64,000 nucleotides of DNA from Macrostomum lignano. Taxonomy: Eukaryota. This document shows, piece after piece, positions 22,071 through 31,776 of this stretch; within the stretch, counting starts at the first letter, position 1; each line of letters opens with the position of its first letter. The stretch lies in NCBI GenBank assembly GCA_002269645.1, contig NIVC01001474.1:165807-229806 (forward strand), read 5' to 3'. Below the pieces are notes generated by a model. The model was not told where the DNA came from, made no database searches, and worked only from the letters and a program-made list of their open reading frames with translations. The position numbers and the translations under genes are program-made.

Positions 22071-24041
22071 TCAGTCAGTCCCGCCGGTGTCCAAGCAGCC
22101 CCGCGCGCTCCACACCATCTTGACGCACTCTTCGGCGTCGTTAAACCACCGATGCGGCCGTCTGACACGACGCTGCAGCAGGCGGATTAGCGACAACAGT
22201 CGGGCCTCGAAACGCGAGTTCAGCTCGTTAGCTAAGAGTGGCGCGGAAGTGGAGAATGAGGACACGAACTCGGCTACAACCCCGACAGTTGATTCCACCT
22301 CGGCTTTGATTGTTGGATCGACAACAAAATTGGCAACATCGTCTAAATTGTTTTTATCGGCACCCTCGACTTCGCTCTTATCGTCCTTAGCAATCGCATC
22401 AATCCATCTAGGCTCCAACGCCAACAAGCCATCATACAGTGGCCACTCATTGGTGCAAGCAACACAGTCGCAGTCGAACAAATACTGAGCCGCAAGACTT
22501 TCTTGACGCTGCTGTTTCGGATGCACAGCCCAATGCAAACCGTAGTTGTCAAGGAGCTCCTCGCCTTTAGCAATCGGTCGGAGAGCTCGAATCTCCAGTC
22601 TCAAACCGGGACAAGTGACTCGCGATACATTCGGATCGCAAGAATGATTAATTAAACTAGCCGTTGGATACACAGCCGACCCAATATCTCTGATAGTCAG
22701 TGCAGAAATATCCACTGAGCTGCCATTGTCAGTACTACTACTAGTAGTCAGCCTACTTGGCGGAGCGGACAATGCAGTTACATCGTGAGCATTGCACGGC
22801 ACCAGCATCAGATGGCGCAGCAGTGCTGCAACAAGTGGGGCGGCTACATCTAGCTGAGAATTTGACTCAGACTCGACACTGAGCAGCAGAGCCATCTGGC
22901 AGGCAACGGCGACTCGCTGAGCCAAATCGCGACTCTCTCGCTGTCGTTCTCCAGCTACCAAAGCCAGCACCGATTGATAATCGCCAGCAGATCCGAATAC
23001 CGATTCGAAATCTTTGAAATTCTTCGCCTTAGCAACAGCTTGAGCAGCGGAAACCGGACCGCCAGCAGCGATCACGGTGGCGAAAGCGAGCCGACCAATG
23101 CTCGCATTGAATGCGGAGTCCAACCAGCCAGCCAGCCAGCCGCATTCCACCCTGTGGACCGGGTCGTTATCCCGACAAGTCTCCGAGCAGAAGCCAACAA
23201 CTGAGCAGTCGCTACAGGGCAGCAACCGTTGGCAAGGTGCCAAGCAGGCTGAGCAGTGACTATCGCGAAGATTTGACAGTAGAATGGCGCTGAAAGCCGG
23301 CTCAGAGACCAACAGGTCTCCAACATCGACGTCTTCAAGAGCAACAAGACAGCGACCGCGACTCTCGTCTGCCAGAGCGAGCTGCAACTTGGCGCTGGCG
23401 TGCGGCAGCTGGGGATTAAAATCCCGCAACAACGATTGAGATGCTGCTGCTGGCTGGGAAACACTTGAGGATTTCGACACTGACATTCTCTTCTGACAGT
23501 CAGCGATGCGACCTGTCAGCTTACCGGCCCGCTCGTCGCCATACGGCAACCGTAGAGCCGCTTCAGCATCGGCTATGGCTTCCGCATAGCAACCGAGACG
23601 TTTGAACACCAGCGAACGGTTGGCAAAAGCCACGGCAAGATCCGAGCTACCTGGCTGGGCGTGCCGGATGCATTCAGAAAATCGTAGCGCCGCTAAACGC
23701 AGCAGGCCGCAGTCGAGGGCTTCCAGACCGGCCGAACGAGCTTCCGCTAGGCGAGCTGGACTCTTGGCGTCGCTAGGCAACGGACGCTGATGCTTTGTCC
23801 AGACGGTGGCACTTCTGGCAGCATAGTTAGACCAATCAATCGAGGCAAGCACTCGTTCGGCAAGACGAAGTTCGAATTCCATGGATGCCGTGGAATCGTT
23901 GAGAATATTGGTTGCTTCGTTTGAGCCTAGCCAGTCAAGAGCTGCGGCTGCAGCTTTAGTACCGAGCGACTTCATTGACTGCAGCATGCTGCTGCTCTTG
24001 ACTGGGGATGCCATTTGTCTGTTAGAGCTCTCGACTGGCAT
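22071..24041 (-). CDS. SMYD4: SET and MYND domain protein, SMYD4-like, intronless (~650 aa; start at 24041 or 24014)
   Basis: TPR-like region (LAVAFANRSLVFKRLGCYAEAIADA), split SET (RGRCLVALEDVDVGDLL...LINHSCDPN...GEELLDNY), MYND finger (CSACL...CSDC...FCSETC...HRVEC), post-SET FDCDCVAC. The ORF track start at 24185 is a non-ATG codon. Confidence 0.85.
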   Translation of the reverse strand: MPVESSNRQMASPVKSSSMLQSMKSLGTKAAAAALDWLGSNEATNILNDSTASMEFELRLAERVLASIDWSNYAARSATVWTKHQRPLPSDAKSPARLAEARSAGLEALDCGLLRLAALRFSECIRHAQPGSSDLAVAFANRSLVFKRLGCYAEAIADAEAALRLPYGDERAGKLTGRIADCQKRMSVSKSSSVSQPAAASQSLLRDFNPQLPHASAKLQLALADESRGRCLVALEDVDVGDLLVSEPAFSAILLSNLRDSHCSACLAPCQRLLPCSDCSVVGFCSETCRDNDPVHRVECGWLAGWLDSAFNASIGRLAFATVIAAGGPVSAAQAVAKAKNFKDFESVFGSAGDYQSVLALVAGERQRESRDLAQRVAVACQMALLLSVESESNSQLDVAAPLVAALLRHLMLVPCNAHDVTALSAPPSRLTTSSSTDNGSSVDISALTIRDIGSAVYPTASLINHSCDPNVSRVTCPGLRLEIRALRPIAKGEELLDNYGLHWAVHPKQQRQESLAAQYLFDCDCVACTNEWPLYDGLLALEPRWIDAIAKDDKSEVEGADKNNLDDVANFVVDPTIKAEVESTVGVVAEFVSSFSTSAPLLANELNSRFEARLLSLIRLLQRRVRRPHRWFNDAEECVKMVWSARGCLDTGGTD

Positions 24042-24837: not shown

Positions 24838-26145
24838 CTAAGCAAGCTTTGAACGTTTAGTCGCGGTGGCAGAGTTGGACTCATCTGCGTTCGAATCTTC
24901 CAGTTTCTTTTTCATATCGGTGACAACTTCATCTTTGATTTTGATACTTTGATTTGAACTCTCCGACGAGGTGCGTTGAGCACTTTCCAAAGTGCGCTCT
25001 GTACTTTCAGAAATGGGTTCCAAAGTGCGCTCTGTACTTTTAGAAATGCGTTCCAAAGTGCGCTCTGTACTTTCCGAAGTACAATGTGCACTTTCCGAAG
25101 TGCATTTTGAACTTTCCAAAGTGCGTTCTGTACTTGGAATTTCGCATTTAGCTTCTTTTTGAGCTTCTCTATCGATTTTTCGATTCTGATCAGACTCGGC
25201 GAATCGCCATGGAAACCGTTCACTCTTTCGCGTATGCTTAGAAAACAGTCTCAACGGTTGCAGGCGAAGCAACGGCCTCAGCATCTCTTCGGCATCAATG
25301 CCGAGCAGTTCCCGACAGACCAACGACATGACAAGATCGCAGCGAGCATTTATACGCAGATAACTCTGAGCATCTTTCTTTGTAGACTGCAGATTAACAA
25401 TGACTAATTTGCCGCCCATTGTGGGCAGATCGGCGGCCGGCACAATCTGCAAACTGGTGCCCAGAGTCAGATTAACGGTAGCCCGACTGGAATGCTCGCG
25501 AGCTCGACGAAGATCTGCCTGTGGCAGCTGATGCTCCCAGTCTAGCACCGTGTCCAGCATCTGGCCGCCGCAGATGCCGTCAACGCTGTCACCAGCATCG
25601 CCACCGGCTTTGACGGATTTCTTTCTGCCTCGCCTAGCCGGAGCTCCGCACCGCCTCCCGGTGGCTTTCTGACCGACCGTCTCCACCGGTTGGTCTCTCG
25701 CCCGGTGCAAGCCGCACCGGCTGCACCGCTCAACAAACATATCGCCATGCAAAATCGACAACCGATTGCGAGGAAATCCAGACCGAAGGTGCAAACCGTC
25801 AACATTCTGCGTCACCAGGTAGTGAACGAATCCGGCCGTTTCCAAGGCAACCAGAGCGGCGTGAGTAAGTGTTGGTTGAGCCTCTTCAAACTTGGCCCCG
25901 GCTTCAACTGTTCGACCTTCGCGTTCCAGAGTCCAGACGCCGTTGGGGCCGCGGAAATCCGGGATTCCGGCCGAGGTGCTGACGCCAGCTCCCGTGTGGA
26001 CAACGACTCGAGCTCCGGGCTGTCGAATCAGGCCCACCAGCTGACGAGCTTTCAACTCCCAATCGGCTTGGGACTCGTGAGTTTCGGGCAGGCCCAGAGT
26101 GCCTTTGTCCGAGTATTCGGACAGCCCGGCCGAGTAGTTGGCCGA
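24838..26145 (-). CDS. SIRT6: NAD-dependent deacylase sirtuin-6, intronless; start Met not genomically encoded
   Basis: SANYSAGLSEYSDKG matches the SIRT6 N-terminus MSVNYAAGLSPYADKG; HTGAGVSTSAGIPDFRGPNGVWT, TQNVDGLH, LHGDMFVERCSRC, LDWE, LGTSLQI, IVNLQ. Confidence 0.93.
   Translation of the reverse strand, partial: SANYSAGLSEYSDKGTLGLPETHESQADWELKARQLVGLIRQPGARVVVHTGAGVSTSAGIPDFRGPNGVWTLEREGRTVEAGAKFEEAQPTLTHAALVALETAGFVHYLVTQNVDGLHLRSGFPRNRLSILHGDMFVERCSRCGLHRARDQPVETVGQKATGRRCGAPARRGRKKSVKAGGDAGDSVDGICGGQMLDTVLDWEHQLPQADLRRAREHSSRATVNLTLGTSLQIVPAADLPTMGGKLVIVNLQSTKKDAQSYLRINARCDLVMSLVCRELLGIDAEEMLRPLLRLQPLRLFSKHTRKSERFPWRFAESDQNRKIDREAQKEAKCEIPSTERTLESSKCTSESAHCTSESTERTLERISKSTERTLEPISESTERTLESAQRTSSESSNQSIKIKDEVVTDMKKKLEDSNADESNSATATKRSKLA
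24981..25137 (-). repeat. 33-bp coding minisatellite in the SIRT6 C-terminal tail
   Basis: ttccaaagtgcgctctgtactttcagaaatggg-type units encoding (S)TERTLE.. repeats. Confidence 0.8.
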
Positions 26146-26168
26146 CTGGAGGTGGGAGGGAGGAGATG
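26146..26168 (-). promoter_or_regulatory. Putative trans-splice acceptor of SIRT6
   Basis: Minus strand catctcctccctcccacctccag|TCG GCC AAC TAC; the CAG occupies the Met1 codon position. Confidence 0.75.
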
Positions 26169-26254
26169 AACTGTTGGTGTGTTGCCGTACCGACTAATGT
26201 TTTTCTATAACGTTATGGACCTTAATCATCTCTATTCTCTCTAAAAAATCCCTG

Positions 26255-27115
26255 CCATCTCTAAACCCCCTTAATCTCATTTATCTGTTCTCTCCCCCAA
26301 TCACAGCCATCTCTAATCCCCCTCAATCCCATTTATCTCTGTTCTCTCCCCCAATCACAGCCATCTCTAATCCCCCTCAATCCCATTTATCTCTGTTCTC
26401 TCCCCCAATCACAGCCATCTCTAATCCCCCTTAATCTCATTTATCTGTTCTCTCCCCCAATCACAGCCATCTCTAATCCCCCTCAATCTCATTTATCTGT
26501 TCTCTCCCCCAATCACAGCCATCTCTAATCCCCATTAATCCCATTTATCTCTGTTCTCTACCCCAATCACAGCCATCTCTAATCCCCCTCAATCTCATTT
26601 ATCTCTGTTCTCTCCCCCAATCACAGCCATCTCTAATCCCCCTCAATCCCATTTATCTCTGTTCTCTCCCCCAATCACAGCCATCTCTAATCCCCCTCAA
26701 TCTCATTTATCTCTGTTCTCTACCCCAATCACAGCCATCTCTAATCCCCCTCAATCTCATTTATCTCTGTTCTCTACCCCAATCACAGCCATTTCTAATC
26801 CCCCTTAATCCCATTTATCTCTGTTCTCTGCCCCAATCACAGCCATATCTAATCTCCCTTAATCTCATATATCTCTGTTCTCTACCCCAATCACAGCCAT
26901 ATCTAATCCCCCTTAATCTCATTATCTCTGTTCTACCCCAATCCCAGCCATCTCTAATCTCCCTTAATCTCATTTATCTCTGTTCTCTCCCCCAATCACA
27001 GCCATCTCTAGATCTTAATCTCAATTAATCTCAATTCTCTAAGAATCCCAGCCATTTCTAATCTCCAACCCAGTCTCAATTCATTTCTATTACCTTCCCT
27101 AATCACAGTCATCTC
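26255..27115. repeat. ~54-bp minisatellite between the DGAT1-like gene and SIRT6
   Basis: Unit atctctaatccccctcaatctcatttatctctgttctctcccccaatcacagcc. Confidence 0.93.
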
Positions 27116-27391: not shown

Positions 27392-30300
27392 TCAAAGATA
27401 GTACTGACAGTAGTCAGCATAGGCCAGTCTAGCTAGCACTGGCAGGCCAAGCACAAGGCAGAGCCAAACGAAAGCATTGTTGCCGAATCTGATGCAGGCG
27501 GCATCCAGAATGGGCAGCACGATGGCCACAGTGAGCAGAGGCCACGGCTGGGGCGATCGAAGCACTGCGGACACAACCAGCTGGGCCAGGAGAGCCCAGG
27601 CTAGACTAGGCAGATTGAATTCCGCTGCGGATGGCCACACAGACGTCAGCAGGTTGGTCAGGCTTGAAGCATTCCACCAGAGTCGCTTGGTTTGAGTTAG
27701 TTTGCTACTGATAGTAGTGTCCTCAGCTGAGGATTTCTGCTGTTGAAATCATTTGTTTAGGTGGAAAATGAGTTTTTTTTACGTTTCTTTAAGTGGAATT
27801 TTTTAATTTCAATAATTAACATAGAAAGGCATTTCCTAAATAACTTTTACAGGCGATTCCTAAATGACGTCAAAGGGCGATTCCAAAATAACTTCAAAGG
27901 GCGATTCCAAAATAACTTCAAAGGGCGATTCCTAAATAACTTCAATGGCCGATTTCTAAATAACTTCAATGGCCGATTTCTAAATAACTTCAAAAGGTGA
28001 TTCCTGAAAAACTTCAAAGGGCGATTCCTAAATAACTTCAAAAGGTGATTCTTAAATAACTTCAAAAGGTGATTCCTAAATAACTTCAAAAGGTGATTCT
28101 TAAATAACTTCAAAGGGCGATTCCTAAATAACTTCAAAGGGCGATTCCTAAATAACTTCAAAAGGTGATTCCTGAAAAACTTCAAAGGGCGATTCCTAAA
28201 TAACTTCAAAAGGTGATTCCTGAAAAACTTCAAAGGGCGATTCCTAAATAACTTCAAAGGGTGATTCCTAAATAACTTCAAAGGGCGATTCCTAAATAAC
28301 TTCAAAGGGTGATTCCTAAATAACTTCAAAGGGCGATTCCTAAATAACTTCAAAGGGCGATTTCTAAATAACTTCAAAGGGCGATTCCTAAATAACTTCA
28401 AAGGGTGATACCTAAATAACTTCAAAGGGCGATTCCTAAATAACTTCAAAGGGTGATACCTAAATAACTTCAAAGGGTGATTCCTGAAAAACTTCAAAGG
28501 GCGATTCCTAAATAACTTCAAAAGGTGATTCCTAAATAACTTCAAAGGGTGATTCTTAAATAACTTCAAAGGGTGATTCCTAAAAATCTTAAAAGCTTAC
28601 ACTAAACTTAGAAACGAACAATGAAAAGCTAAAAATAAAGAAATAGCACTTACAAAGTCACTGCCAGACTGAAAGCAGAAATCCAACAGTTTCAGAATCC
28701 GATCCATTGCCGCTCCTGCAGCCAAGCAGACGGCAATAACAGGAGGCGACAGGCGCAGTTGCCTCTCAACCATCACCAGCCAGCAGGGCGCATTGTACTC
28801 GTAGCTATTAGCAGCTGGATCAGATGAGGCGGCAGCTAGAGAAGGCATTAACCACTGCTGAGTCAGAGCCACTATAGCAACTAATAGTCCCGCTAGTTGA
28901 GCAAAGCCAATTAGCAGCATTCTGTTGACACTGACAACCCGAAGTTGAACGAGTTGCCTGGCAATGCGCTGACGCTGCAGGTGCAAATTGGTCAGCTTGA
29001 GGAACAGAGCCACACTGATTGACATTCCTGCGAAGCCGACAACTGTTGAAGCGGGGATAGCGAGACGGAGGGTTATATTACACCTGAGTTCATGGGGTGC
29101 ATCAACACACCTGGGTTTATATGAGGTGCATTAACACACCTGGGTTTTATATGGGGTGCATTAACACACCTGGGTTTTATGGGGTGCATTAACACACCTG
29201 GGTTTTATATGGGGTGCATTAACACACCTGGGTTTTATATGGGGTGCATTAACACACCTGGGTTTTATATGGGGTGCATTAACACACCTGGGTTTTATAT
29301 GGGGTGCATTAACACACTTGGGTTTTATATGGGGTGCATTAACACACTTGGGTTTTATATGGGGTGCATTAACACACCTGGGTTTTATATGGGGTGCATT
29401 AACACACTTGGGTTTTATATGGGGTGCATTAACACACCTGGGTTTTATATGGGGTGCATTAACACACCTGGGTTTTATATGGGGTGCATTAACACACCTG
29501 GGTTTTATATGGGGTGCATTAACACACCTGGGTTTTATATGGGGTGCATTAACGCACCTGGGTTTCATGGGGTGCATTAACACACCTGGGTTTATATCGG
29601 GTGCATTAACGCACCTGGGTTTTATATAACACACCTGGGTTTTAAGGGGTGCATTAACGCACCTGGGTTTATATGGGGTGCATTAACGCACCTGGGTTTT
29701 AAGGGGTGCATTAACGCACCTGGGTTTATATGGGGTGCATTAACACACCTGGGTTTTATAAGGGGTACATTAACGCACCTAGGTTTTATAAAACACACCT
29801 GGGTTTTAAGGGTTTTAAGGAGTGCATTAACACACCAGGGTTTTAAGGGTACAGCGAAGTATTTCAAAAAAGCTTTCAATCAAGGTATTCAAGGCTGCTC
29901 ATAACACAGTACTCAACCCAAGTTTAAAGGTAATAGGAAATACTCACTGGGCGAAGGCCTAGACCACAGCACAATGCAAGCAGGAGCCACCAGAAGCAGA
30001 CAGACACTGCTGGCCACTCCGAGCCTCCGATAGCCAGAAGAAGCGGCAAAAGCAGACGCATTCAGAGCGGCAAAAGCAACGCAGACCAGGCCGGCAATGC
30101 AGGCTGGACCGCCTCCAACAGCCAGGCAGCTAAGAGGATTTCCAGCCAGAGGGCCGTATCTTAGATGGGACTCTAACAGACAGCGAGCGATGCACATCGA
30201 TAGAAGGATTAGCAATGGGCTTAGTAGGCCTCTGAAAGCGCCTCTGCTTTGGCCTAATTGGCCTGGCCGACTTAGCAGACTGTCTGCTGGACTGTGGATC

Positions 30301-31776
30301 TGCCGACGCCTGGAAGCATTTCCAGCAGGGAAGAGATGCGTCAGGTGAACTATTGAGTATGTTGATATTCAATTAATGGGATTTAATTTAAGATTTCATT
30401 TAAGGTTGTTTAAGCATGTAAATTAAAAGCAAGCCCAGGTCTTTGGATTTTTGTACAGATTGTAAAATCGAATTATAATTTTAAGATAAGTAAAGCAAAT
30501 TTGAGCATTATCTAAATTAGCCTGTAACCTAGGTCCTAGATTTGATACTTGAGACAGAAGATACCACCTGAGAGAGTAGATACCACCTGAGACAGTAGAT
30601 ACCACCTGAGAAACAGTAGATACCACCTGAGAAACAGTAGATACCACCTGAGAGACAGTAGATACCACCTGAAAAACAGTAGATACCACTTGAGAGACAG
30701 TAGAGGTCACCTAAGAGACAGTAGATACCACCTGAGAGACAGTAGATGTCACCTAAGAGACAGTAGCTAACCATCTGAGAGACAGTAGATACCATCTGAG
30801 AGACAGTAGATACCATCTGAGAGACAGTAGATCCCAGCTAAGAGACAGTAGCTACCATCTGAGAGACAGTAGATTATGTAGATACCATCTGAGAGACAGT
30901 AGATACCATCTGAGAGACAGTAGATGTCACCTAAGAGACAGTAGCTAACCATCTGAGAGACAGTAGATACCATCTGAGAGACAGTAGATCCCAGCTAAGA
31001 GACAGTAGCTACCATCTGAGAGACAGTAGATTATGTAGATACCATCTGAGAGACAGTAGATACCACCTAAGAGACAGTTGCTACCATCTGAGAGACAGTA
31101 GATACCATCTAAGAGACAGTAGCTACCATCTGAGAGACAGTAGCTACCACCTAAGATAAGAGACAGTACTTAGATACCTCTGGCACCCTGGTTTTAATTT
31201 AAGTTTGGCATCCTAAATTCGAACACAGGTAACTAGTGATCTGTCCTAGGTTTTAAAAGATGGAATACAGCAATGCTGATTGCTGAGTAGGACTTGCTTC
31301 ATTAGCAACAACAGACTACACATATTAATTAGGCCAACTAACCCATCTTGATCTTCCGGTACGCTTTGCTGCTCCCAGTCGCATTTCAGCCACGCCAGCA
31401 ACTGCCTACCAACTATACCAGCAGCATTGGCTAGGGCAGACGATTTCACAATCGATTTTGCACGACTCCTCAAATCGATGTTTAGATAGGACCGACGACT
31501 CAAAGTAGACACCGAATCGAACGAATTTGAACGCCTATGACGACGCTTCGGTCGAGAACGTTCAATAACGGTTGACGCAGCGGCGCTACTTGATGTAGAA
31601 TTCGAAGGCTTAGAAGATTTTTCCGGTGTTTCATCAAGGACATTCTTCTTTGGCTGAGCAAGTTTAGTAGAGCTCAGAAGGCGATAATGCGAAGGCGACA
31701 GAGCAACAGCAGTCGATCCTTCATCATTAGCGTGAACCAAAGGCGCCACGGCTATAATACCGCTGGTGAGATGCAT
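27392..31776 (-). CDS. DGAT1: Highly divergent DGAT1-like MBOAT membrane protein, 4 exons, ~510 aa, probably catalytically inactive
   Basis: Exons 31776-31343, 30309-29948, 29042-28654, 27739-27392 (phases 2, 1, 0 consistent; 1533 nt). Collinear DGAT1-like blocks: IHSPADSLLS, FRGLLSPLLILLSMCIARCLLESHLRYG, LFLKL, QQWLMP, VERQLRL, WWN, FGNNAFVWLCLVLGLPVLARLAYADY. Assignment is by recalled alignment to human DGAT1. Confidence 0.75.
27835..28585. repeat. 24-bp minisatellite (DGAT1-like intron 3)
   Basis: Unit ttcctaaataacttcaaagggcga. Confidence 0.95.
29090..29845. repeat. 30-bp minisatellite (DGAT1-like intron 2)
   Basis: Unit ggggtgcattaacacacctgggttttatat. Confidence 0.95.
30552..31170. repeat. 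~21-23-bp minisatellite (DGAT1-like intron 1)
   Basis: Unit gagacagtagatacca(c/t)ctga. Confidence 0.92.

Follow-up and report, generated by a model that had tools for sequence, protein, structure and literature searches.

Members of enzyme families that have lost catalysis often turn out to be regulators. To our knowledge, HHATL is the only well-known dead member of the MBOAT family. The invariant His of the family is a Leu in HHATL (Hedgehog acyltransferase-like, a mammalian MBOAT), and the protein is thought to be a non-acyltransferase that negatively regulates HHAT (PMC5831804). Within the same family, human DGAT1 (acyl-CoA:diacylglycerol O-acyltransferase 1; structures 6VP0, 6VYI and 6VZ1) shows what catalysis demands: the mutations H415A and E416L abolish activity, mutants of W377, N378, H382 and S411 lose more than 80% of it, and the reaction chamber has its floor built from the loops IL1 and IL2 (bioRxiv 10.1101/2020.01.06.896332). 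In the human dimer, transmembrane segment (TM) 1 packs on TM6 and TM9 of the partner subunit, and residues 64-80 touch the partner's IL1 and IL2 (bioRxiv 10.1101/2020.01.06.896332). SOAT1 and SOAT2 (ACAT), the sister family of DGAT1, have the nine-helix MBOAT fold and the motifs FYxDWWN and SxxxHEY, with oligomerization via N-terminal elements in the SOATs. The gene described here was found in the flatworm Macrostomum lignano, on the minus strand at 31776-27392 of a 64,000-nucleotide stretch of contig NIVC01001474.1 (assembly GCA_002269645.1, positions 165,807 to 229,806; hereafter, the window). It probably encodes a DGAT1-derived, transcribed and non-catalytic membrane protein that is still maintained as a coding gene.

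The flatworm protein is collinear in sequence with DGAT1 over the whole membrane domain, and both have nine hydrophobic segments in one order behind a hydrophilic N-terminal extension. They share the motifs H..DSLxS, (Y/F)RGxL, ARxxLE, YGxL, FLKL (in TM4), QQWxxP and ERxLxLxxP, and, toward the C terminus, WWN, NxP and NxxVWLxLxxGxP...DY (in TM9); one ancient intron position is shared exactly. In contrast, the flatworm protein has lost IL1 by deletion (about 45-70 residues in DGAT1, with YPxN...APTLCYELNFPR), the gene has 3 introns rather than 15-16, and Pfam PF03062 misses the protein. Judged by alignment, the flatworm protein lacks every DGAT1 catalytic feature that was tested, save for the retained Asn378. 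Like HHATL, it is MBOAT-derived and without the catalytic His, and HHATL offers a precedent for a dead regulatory MBOAT, as a functional analogy only. HHATL belongs to the HHAT/Gup branch, keeps its conserved homology regions, is readily recognized as an MBOAT and shows wide conservation. The flatworm protein, by contrast, lacks entire loops and is restricted to its lineage, and all homology found for it is to DGAT1. With respect to the SOATs, the N-terminal/TM1 block is of the DGAT1 type, as judged by alignment to DGAT1s only. By its ancestry and its lost catalytic His, the gene can be classed as encoding an MBOAT pseudoenzyme.

Divergence has gone so far that ordinary searches miss the DGAT1 ancestry. 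The Pfam profile PF03062 (MBOAT) gave no match at E<=10 for the 510-amino-acid model, for P0002 or for UniRef100_A0A1I8G4D6; the positive control, Lottia DGAT1 against the same profile, reached 139.8 bits (E 1.7e-40). Pfam and NCBIfam scans of the model and its copies returned no other informative match, phmmer against PDB sequences returned nothing at E<=10, and phmmer against 1.84 billion representative proteins (query P0002) returned only the query itself. A direct BLASTP comparison with human DGAT1, the sequence of which was checked against PDB entry 6VP0, gave two collinear high-scoring segment pairs, one for the C-terminal half (E 3e-5) and one for the N-terminal block (E 0.002). When human DGAT1 was compared by tblastn with the six frames of the window, exon 4 of the gene ranked first, exon 2 second and exon 3 fifth.

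Comparison of profiles with profiles gave a clearer result. With hhalign, an alignment of four flatworm copies matched a profile of 22 vertebrate DGAT1s over 323 columns (Prob 95.5%, E 1.5e-8, score 70.8) and a profile of 23 metazoan DGAT1s, which takes in molluscs, annelids, crinoids, a tick and a mite, over 325 columns (Prob 98.4%, E 8e-15). The metazoan match spans positions 143-506 of the query and 49-472 of the 489 in the profile. As a control, the columns of the flatworm alignment were shuffled within 12-residue blocks, with the hydrophobicity profile kept. Against the vertebrate DGAT1 profile, 40 such shuffles scored 18.2 on average (standard deviation 3.7, maximum 26.8) and the reversed sequence scored 19.8, compared with the real score of 70.8. 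MAFFT aligned the flatworm protein end to end with 33 DGAT1s. Its identity to DGAT1 is 26-28%, compared with 51-59% for the aligned invertebrate DGAT1s against macaque. A preliminary description of this DNA had named the lack of MBOAT homology in a profile search as grounds for rejecting its proposal of a dead DGAT1-like protein; taken literally, PF03062 does show that lack, and the profile-profile comparison overturns it as an objection.

The gene model was obtained by translating the window in three frames over 31900-27300 and joining the pieces at canonical splice sites. It has four exons with 1533 nt and 510 codons, begins with ATG at 31776 and ends at 27392 with TGA, its sole stop; GT..AG stands at every intron border, and introns 1 to 3 have phases 2, 1 and 0. 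The retranslation reproduces exactly the coordinates, the four exons in consistent phase and the stop-free frame of about 510 amino acids given in the preliminary description. The parts of the gene are as follows.

31343..31776, minus strand: exon 1, an ATG-initiated open reading frame with codons 1-144 plus 2 nt and a GT donor in phase 2
30310..31342, minus strand: intron 1, 1033 nt, phase 2, GT..AG, with a minisatellite inside
29948..30309, minus strand: exon 2, DGAT1 N-terminal segment and TM1, then TM2 and TM3; matches PAA67568.1
29043..29947, minus strand: intron 2, 905 nt, phase 1, splitting codon Ile266, with a minisatellite inside
28654..29042, minus strand: exon 3, TM4 (..ALFLKL), the IL1 deletion site N284-R306, TM5, LTQQWLMP, ERQLRLSPP and a degenerate TM6
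27740..28653, minus strand: intron 3, 914 nt, phase 0, with a minisatellite inside
27392..27739, minus strand: exon 4, a hydrophilic insert, RLWWN, FNLPS, TM7, TM8, TM9 and the stop codon
27685-27671, minus strand: RLWWN, in exon 4
27619-27605, minus strand: FNLPS remnant, in exon 4
27586-27581, minus strand: A447/Q448 in TM7, at the positions of His415/Glu416, in exon 4
27484-27410, minus strand: TM9, GNNAFVWL..GLP..DY, with L494 at the position of Gln465, in exon 4

Exon 1 encodes the hydrophilic N-terminal region, which is rich in Ser, Arg and Lys and has a net charge of +8. Exon 2 aligns with DGAT1 residues about 69-190, and its stretch H150-L199 reads HSPADSLLS...FRGLL...AR.LLE...RYGPL, the N-terminal segment and TM1.

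Intron positions offer a further record of descent. The DGAT1 genes of Lottia gigantea and rat, in exon structures reconstructed for the comparison, have 15 and 16 introns, of which 14 agree in position and phase. Flatworm intron 2 lies in the exact column (348) and phase (1) of intron 6 of both rat and Lottia, and flatworm intron 1 has phase 2 like their intron 1 and stands three codons upstream of it. Intron 3 matches no intron of rat or Lottia DGAT1 and lies next to a 20-residue insertion. With 15 ancient positions and ~975 codon-phase slots, it is estimated that one of three introns would match exactly by chance in about 4.5% of cases. Given these intron positions and phases, the gene descends from an intron-bearing DGAT1 and has lost most of its introns. 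Taken with the profile-profile homology and the nine hydrophobic segments in DGAT1 order, the shared intron position bears out the DGAT1-like origin proposed earlier, and these sequence comparisons indicate that the protein is a descendant of DGAT1. At 27740-28662, which takes in intron 3 together with the SDF|QKSSAEDTTISSKLTQTK codons, the intron stands at the edge of the 20-residue hydrophilic insert, which is found in no DGAT1 and may have arisen by a splice-site shift or by exonization.

The fate of the active site was followed residue by residue in a 36-sequence alignment read against the human DGAT1 structure paper (bioRxiv 10.1101/2020.01.06.896332). The correspondence, with the human residue first and the flatworm state after it, is as follows.

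His415, catalytic His: Ala447
Glu416, catalytic Glu: Gln448
Tyr417, of SxxxHEY: Leu449
Ser411, of SxxxHEY: deleted
Gln465, at the thioester carbonyl: Leu494
Pro466, TM9 kink: retained as Pro495
His382, coenzyme A (CoA) tunnel: Leu or deleted, depending on the alignment
Tyr390 and Lys400, CoA entrance: deleted
Trp334, acyl pocket: Cys371
Phe337 and Phe338, acyl pocket: deleted
Phe342, acyl pocket: Ala374
Phe373 and Trp374, acyl pocket: Leu425 and Leu426
Trp377, CoA tunnel: Phe436
Trp364-Trp365-Asn366, of FYxDWWN: retained
Asn378 and Pro380, of WNxPVH: retained as Asn437 and Pro439

Larger changes accompany these substitutions. All 8 invariant columns of loop IL1 (human DGAT1 residues 222-261, part of the chamber floor) are deleted, and a 27-residue deletion takes out the amphipathic helix of IL2 (380-394, at the CoA entrance) together with the start of TM7. 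TM6 has a 5-residue deletion, and small residues replace the aromatic acyl pocket. Relative to DGAT1, there are also insertions of ~20 hydrophilic residues before WWN and of 7 residues in IL2. No His occurs in residues 287-510. Among the 104 columns that are invariant in 33 metazoan DGAT1s, 40 are retained, 37 substituted and 27 deleted. Retention amounts to 7/11 in the N-terminal segment and TM1, 5/6 in EL1-TM4, 0/8 in IL1, 10/32 in TM5-TM6, 7/21 in IL2 and 11/26 in TM7-TM9. It is uneven, with 12/17 columns kept from the N terminus to TM4 compared with 17/61 in IL1, TM5-6 and IL2 (Fisher P = 0.0035). The best-kept parts of the protein are the segment before TM1, TM1 and TM9; the luminal motifs QQWxxP and ERxLxLxxP are also retained.

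Much of the earlier account of these motifs holds, and some of it needs rewording. The alignments confirm that the IL1 loop (YPDN...APTLCY...FPR) is deleted, and those of exon 2 and TM9 to DGAT1 confirm that the N-terminal SLLS/FRGLL block and the C-terminal GN..VWL...G.P survive; the last exon, as had been stated, is free of His, there being none after residue 286. The reported change of FYRDWWN is correct in that T412-K413-R414-L415-W-W-N aligns opposite F-Y-R-D-W-W-N, a motif degraded to TKRLWWN with only WWN kept and an insert of ~20 residues upstream; the last F of exon 3, which had been assigned to the motif, is probably not the motif's F. WNxPVH had been called absent, but a remnant, F436-N437-L438-P439-S440, keeps Asn378 and Pro380, while Trp377, Val381 and His382 are indeed lost. 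The proposed changes of His to Ala and of Glu to Gln stand to the extent that Ala447 and Gln448 occupy the two positions and that there is no His either way, whereas the apparent substitution could instead reflect the loss of a whole exon. On the whole, the alignments support the view that residues and loops needed by DGAT1 for catalysis and acyl-CoA binding have been substituted or deleted.

The 27-residue gap (columns 623-649; codons 441-449, ~27604-27578) nearly coincides with an ancient 88-nt exon that carries SAFFHE. This exon is rat exon 15 and Lottia exon 14 and occupies columns 625-654. Its loss, with splice shifts that restored the frame, could hypothetically have removed the catalytic His in one step; ALLAQ would then not be strictly homologous to AFFHE.

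Exons hidden elsewhere that would restore the active site were considered and are ruled out by tblastn of DGAT1 across the six frames of the 64-kb window, which revealed no further DGAT1-like coding piece. Extra exons that restore FYxDWWN or the His had been named in the preliminary description as grounds for rejecting its proposal; the window shows none, and the RNA-based annotation has the same junctions.

In sum, the protein keeps a predicted nine-helix layout, the elements that build the domain-swapped dimer in human DGAT1 (N-terminal segment and TM1), the luminal motifs and TM9. The chamber floor on the cytosolic side is gone: IL1, the CoA-entrance helix and the start of TM7 are deleted, and the aromatic pocket, the catalytic pair and Gln465 are replaced. 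Because the floor, the acyl pocket, His415/Glu416 and Gln465 are lost, MBOAT-type acyl transfer is not to be expected and the protein is presumably a pseudoenzyme. Its most likely mode of action, a speculative step, would be that of a membrane scaffold that still dimerizes via TM1/TM9, either in homodimers or together with any catalytic DGAT1 that the genome may encode. Its ancestry suggests a location in the endoplasmic reticulum. A role as a regulatory partner is plausible, given that conservation is highest in the dimer elements. The roles of dominant-negative partner, lipid sensor or scramblase-like channel, all put forward in the preliminary description, are speculation. It is unlikely, in particular, that the protein is a lineage-specific pseudoenzyme that tunes triacylglycerol synthesis or lipid droplets through mixed dimers with catalytic DGAT1 or through lipid-handling homodimers.

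That the M. lignano gene is a paralogue beside a canonical DGAT1 is unproven. With human DGAT1 as the query, only vertebrates and no flatworm DGAT1 were among the matches listed. For a second query, universal DGAT1 motifs were patched into the flatworm sequence; the best 120 of 853 matches were DGAT1s and included no flatworm, which is not evidence of absence, and the patches bias this listing toward DGAT1. The matches listed came from molluscs, annelids, echinoderms, arachnids (tick, mite) and vertebrates. A literature search on the gene, on Macrostomum DGAT1 and on MBOAT pseudoenzymes of the DGAT1 type found nothing relevant, and within that limited search of the searchable literature no dead DGAT1 paralogue has been described, as had been supposed.

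Evidence of transcription comes from the annotation of contig NIVC01001474.1, to which the window is 100% identical over 20 kb. The GenBank protein PAA67568.1 (BOX15_Mlig030436g1) is identical, residue by residue, to exons 2-4, and the RNA-derived coding sequence (CDS) covers exactly exons 2-4 at four annotated loci. The GenBank models of the Mlig_3_7 assembly were built only from RNA-seq-derived transcripts (StringTie/TACO and a de novo transcriptome), and novel transcripts below 0.5 reads per kilobase per million (RPKM) were dropped (PMC5730564). Because an RNA-derived model equals exons 2-4, the gene is transcribed, and the splicing of introns 2 and 3 follows the model. The other GenBank copies are PAA46109.1 / PAA85778.1 (Mlig015824g1) and PAA52722.1 (Mlig015824g2), and there are two WormBase/UniProt models besides. 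Current labels of the gene copies are "hypothetical protein" or "transmembrane protein". The UniRef name of UniRef100_A0A1I8G4D6, "GPI ethanolamine phosphate transferase 3", is without support in the Pfam and NCBIfam scans and seems to be an annotation error that has been passed on. Mlig_3_7 contains at least three distinct copies of the gene that are intact, namely that of the window, that of L001/L002 (two loci with an identical CDS) and that of L003, a third allele, each with an open 1533-nt CDS.

Several observations weigh against a DGAT1 derivative that is still maintained for its protein. No orthologue was found outside M. lignano, and a word-indexed search of 5.8 billion proteins returned two clusters, both from M. 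lignano. AlphaFold2 models are of low confidence, with a predicted local distance difference test (pLDDT) score of 47 from the single sequence and of 53.5 from the DGAT1-anchored 36-sequence alignment (predicted template modelling score, pTM, 0.35), a run that is partly circular; in a Foldseek search against the PDB, the top match was the plant DGAT1 9vjx_B, which is not significant (E 0.16, TM-score 0.31). Every GenBank CDS is 5'-partial, with ragged starts a few codons inside exon 2. Between the window and L001, the CDS differs at 21 sites, 8 synonymous and 13 non-synonymous, which gives a synonymous divergence (dS) of 0.020, a non-synonymous divergence (dN) of 0.012 and a dN/dS of 0.57; this value is not significantly below 1 (binomial P = 0.15), and dN/dS between homeologous copies rests on few differences (21-23). 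Neighbouring genes in the same copies have lower ratios, 0.06-0.30 for SET and 0.27 for the SIR2-like gene. Because the ratio of 0.57 is not distinguishable from 1 and is higher than in these neighbours, present-day constraint is weak or unproven. The dN/dS, the lack of homologues outside M. lignano and the 5'-partial models would also fit a transcribed relic, a DGAT1 duplicate that lost its function and is drifting, with its frames open only because the copies split recently (~2%), and so would the coding divergence among copies (1.4%), only modestly under the non-coding divergence (2.1%), and the high redundancy of the genome, in which a spare copy is expendable (PMC5730564). Such a relic is nevertheless somewhat unlikely. 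At 26-28% identity to DGAT1, all rearrangements are in frame and 510 codons are free of stops, whereas a frame with codons randomized at such divergence would stay open with P ~2e-8. Extreme divergence together with an open frame implies either that selection for coding continued for long once the active site had been taken apart or that a burst of change was improbably recent. Gap events number 0 in the CDS compared with 10 in 1987 aligned non-repeat flanking and intronic nt, where ~7.7 would be expected for the CDS (Poisson P ~4.5e-4), in a test that presumes coding and non-coding DNA to be equally indel-prone, while non-coding DNA may be more so. Amino-acid differences between copies within hydrophobic segments are all conservative. 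Two features, a CDS free of indels and conserved residues that are retained unevenly, argue for maintenance. The intact frame, which had been read as a sign of function, is borne out as such only in part, by these two features and not by the dN/dS.

The remaining rivals concern what the gene makes and what its product does. It is very unlikely that the 510-residue product is an artefact of the model, with other exons, another frame or a trans-spliced start at exon 2. Because the GenBank CDSs begin inside exon 2, exon 1 is without RNA support and its junction is predicted; repeat-rich introns hamper transcript assembly, the WormBase models P0001 and UniRef100_A0A1I8G4D6 splice differently, and 38.8% of annotated M. 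lignano genes are trans-spliced (PMC5730564). Exon 1 nonetheless has support of its own in an ATG-started frame that stays open for ~150 codons (P ~7e-4 by chance), a donor of fitting phase at its end, an intact and indel-free sequence in L001/L002 and L003, and its use by the WormBase predictions (P0001; P0125 = UniRef100_A0A1I8G4D6). Against an artefact, exons 2-4, which bear all the diagnostic features, equal the RNA-derived CDS at the four annotated loci, and the window contains no extra DGAT1-like piece. The unusual internal stretch of P0001 is exon 3 read in the +1 frame, and its source is the older ML2 assembly of M. lignano, which is error-rich and of low base accuracy (PMC5730564). 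Continued catalysis, whether acyl transfer or another lipid reaction at a rebuilt active site (e.g., with Asn437 and other polar residues), is highly improbable. The protein does retain the equivalents of Asn378, Pro380, Trp364, Trp365, Asn366 and Pro466, and the chamber helices TM2-TM5 and TM7-TM9 are still recognizable. However, it has no His from residue 287 onward, and either H415A or E416L is by itself enough to abolish the activity of human DGAT1; deletion or replacement has also affected IL1, the CoA-entrance helix and the aromatic acyl pocket, and no MBOAT profile matches. A transcribed, non-catalytic DGAT1 derivative kept as a coding gene is the probable reading.

A side observation touches the start of the transcript. 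The M. lignano spliced leader, which we take to end at its 3' end in AUG, would, if joined at the exon 2 acceptor, open another frame of ~70 codons (ASADPQSSRQ..., 30133-30309, minus strand). This frame is not the DGAT1-like one, which speaks against a trans-spliced start at exon 2 and bears on how the 5'-partial GenBank models are read.

Tandem arrays identified with Tandem Repeats Finder (TRF) make up most of each of the three introns, and another array lies just downstream of the gene.

30551-31156: minisatellite in intron 1, 21/42-nt units x15
29092-29790: minisatellite in intron 2, 30-nt units x24
27833-28595: minisatellite in intron 3, 24-nt units x32
26247-27010: array just downstream of the gene, 54-nt units x14

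Introns 2 and 3 are 210 and 238 nt long in copies L001/L003, compared with 905 and 914 nt in the window; therefore, the arrays grew or shrank after the copies split (~2% divergence).

Beyond the downstream array, at 24838-26148 on the minus strand, lies a SIR2-like open reading frame that is intact, has a single exon and is unannotated on contig NIVC01001474.1. It has 92.8% amino-acid identity to an annotated 456-amino-acid gene in L001, and the copy number of its C-terminal "STERTLE"-type repeat differs between copies. Between the same homeologous contigs (L001-L004 against the window), dS varies locally, being 0.020 for the DGAT1-like gene, 0.034-0.058 for SET (~22071-24011) and 0.052 for the SIR2-like gene, and some segments of L001 and L003 hardly differ. 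Such a pattern would fit mosaic ancestry, or gene conversion between copies, in this neopolyploid genome.

A dead DGAT1 derivative would carry the idea of the pseudoenzyme regulator into neutral-lipid synthesis, and, as a natural "scaffold-only" DGAT1, it would allow dimerization to be studied apart from catalysis. If the regulatory reading, with mixed dimers or lipid-handling homodimers, is true, the gene would be the first regulatory "dead DGAT1" and an orphan-like gene that arose through the extreme divergence of an ancient enzyme. It offers a worked example of a gene that is an orphan by divergence and not de novo, with its ancestry recovered from intron positions and by comparing profiles with profiles. 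Should M. lignano lack any other DGAT1, the gene would instead signify a loss of DGAT1 activity, with a bearing on the fat storage of this model flatworm.

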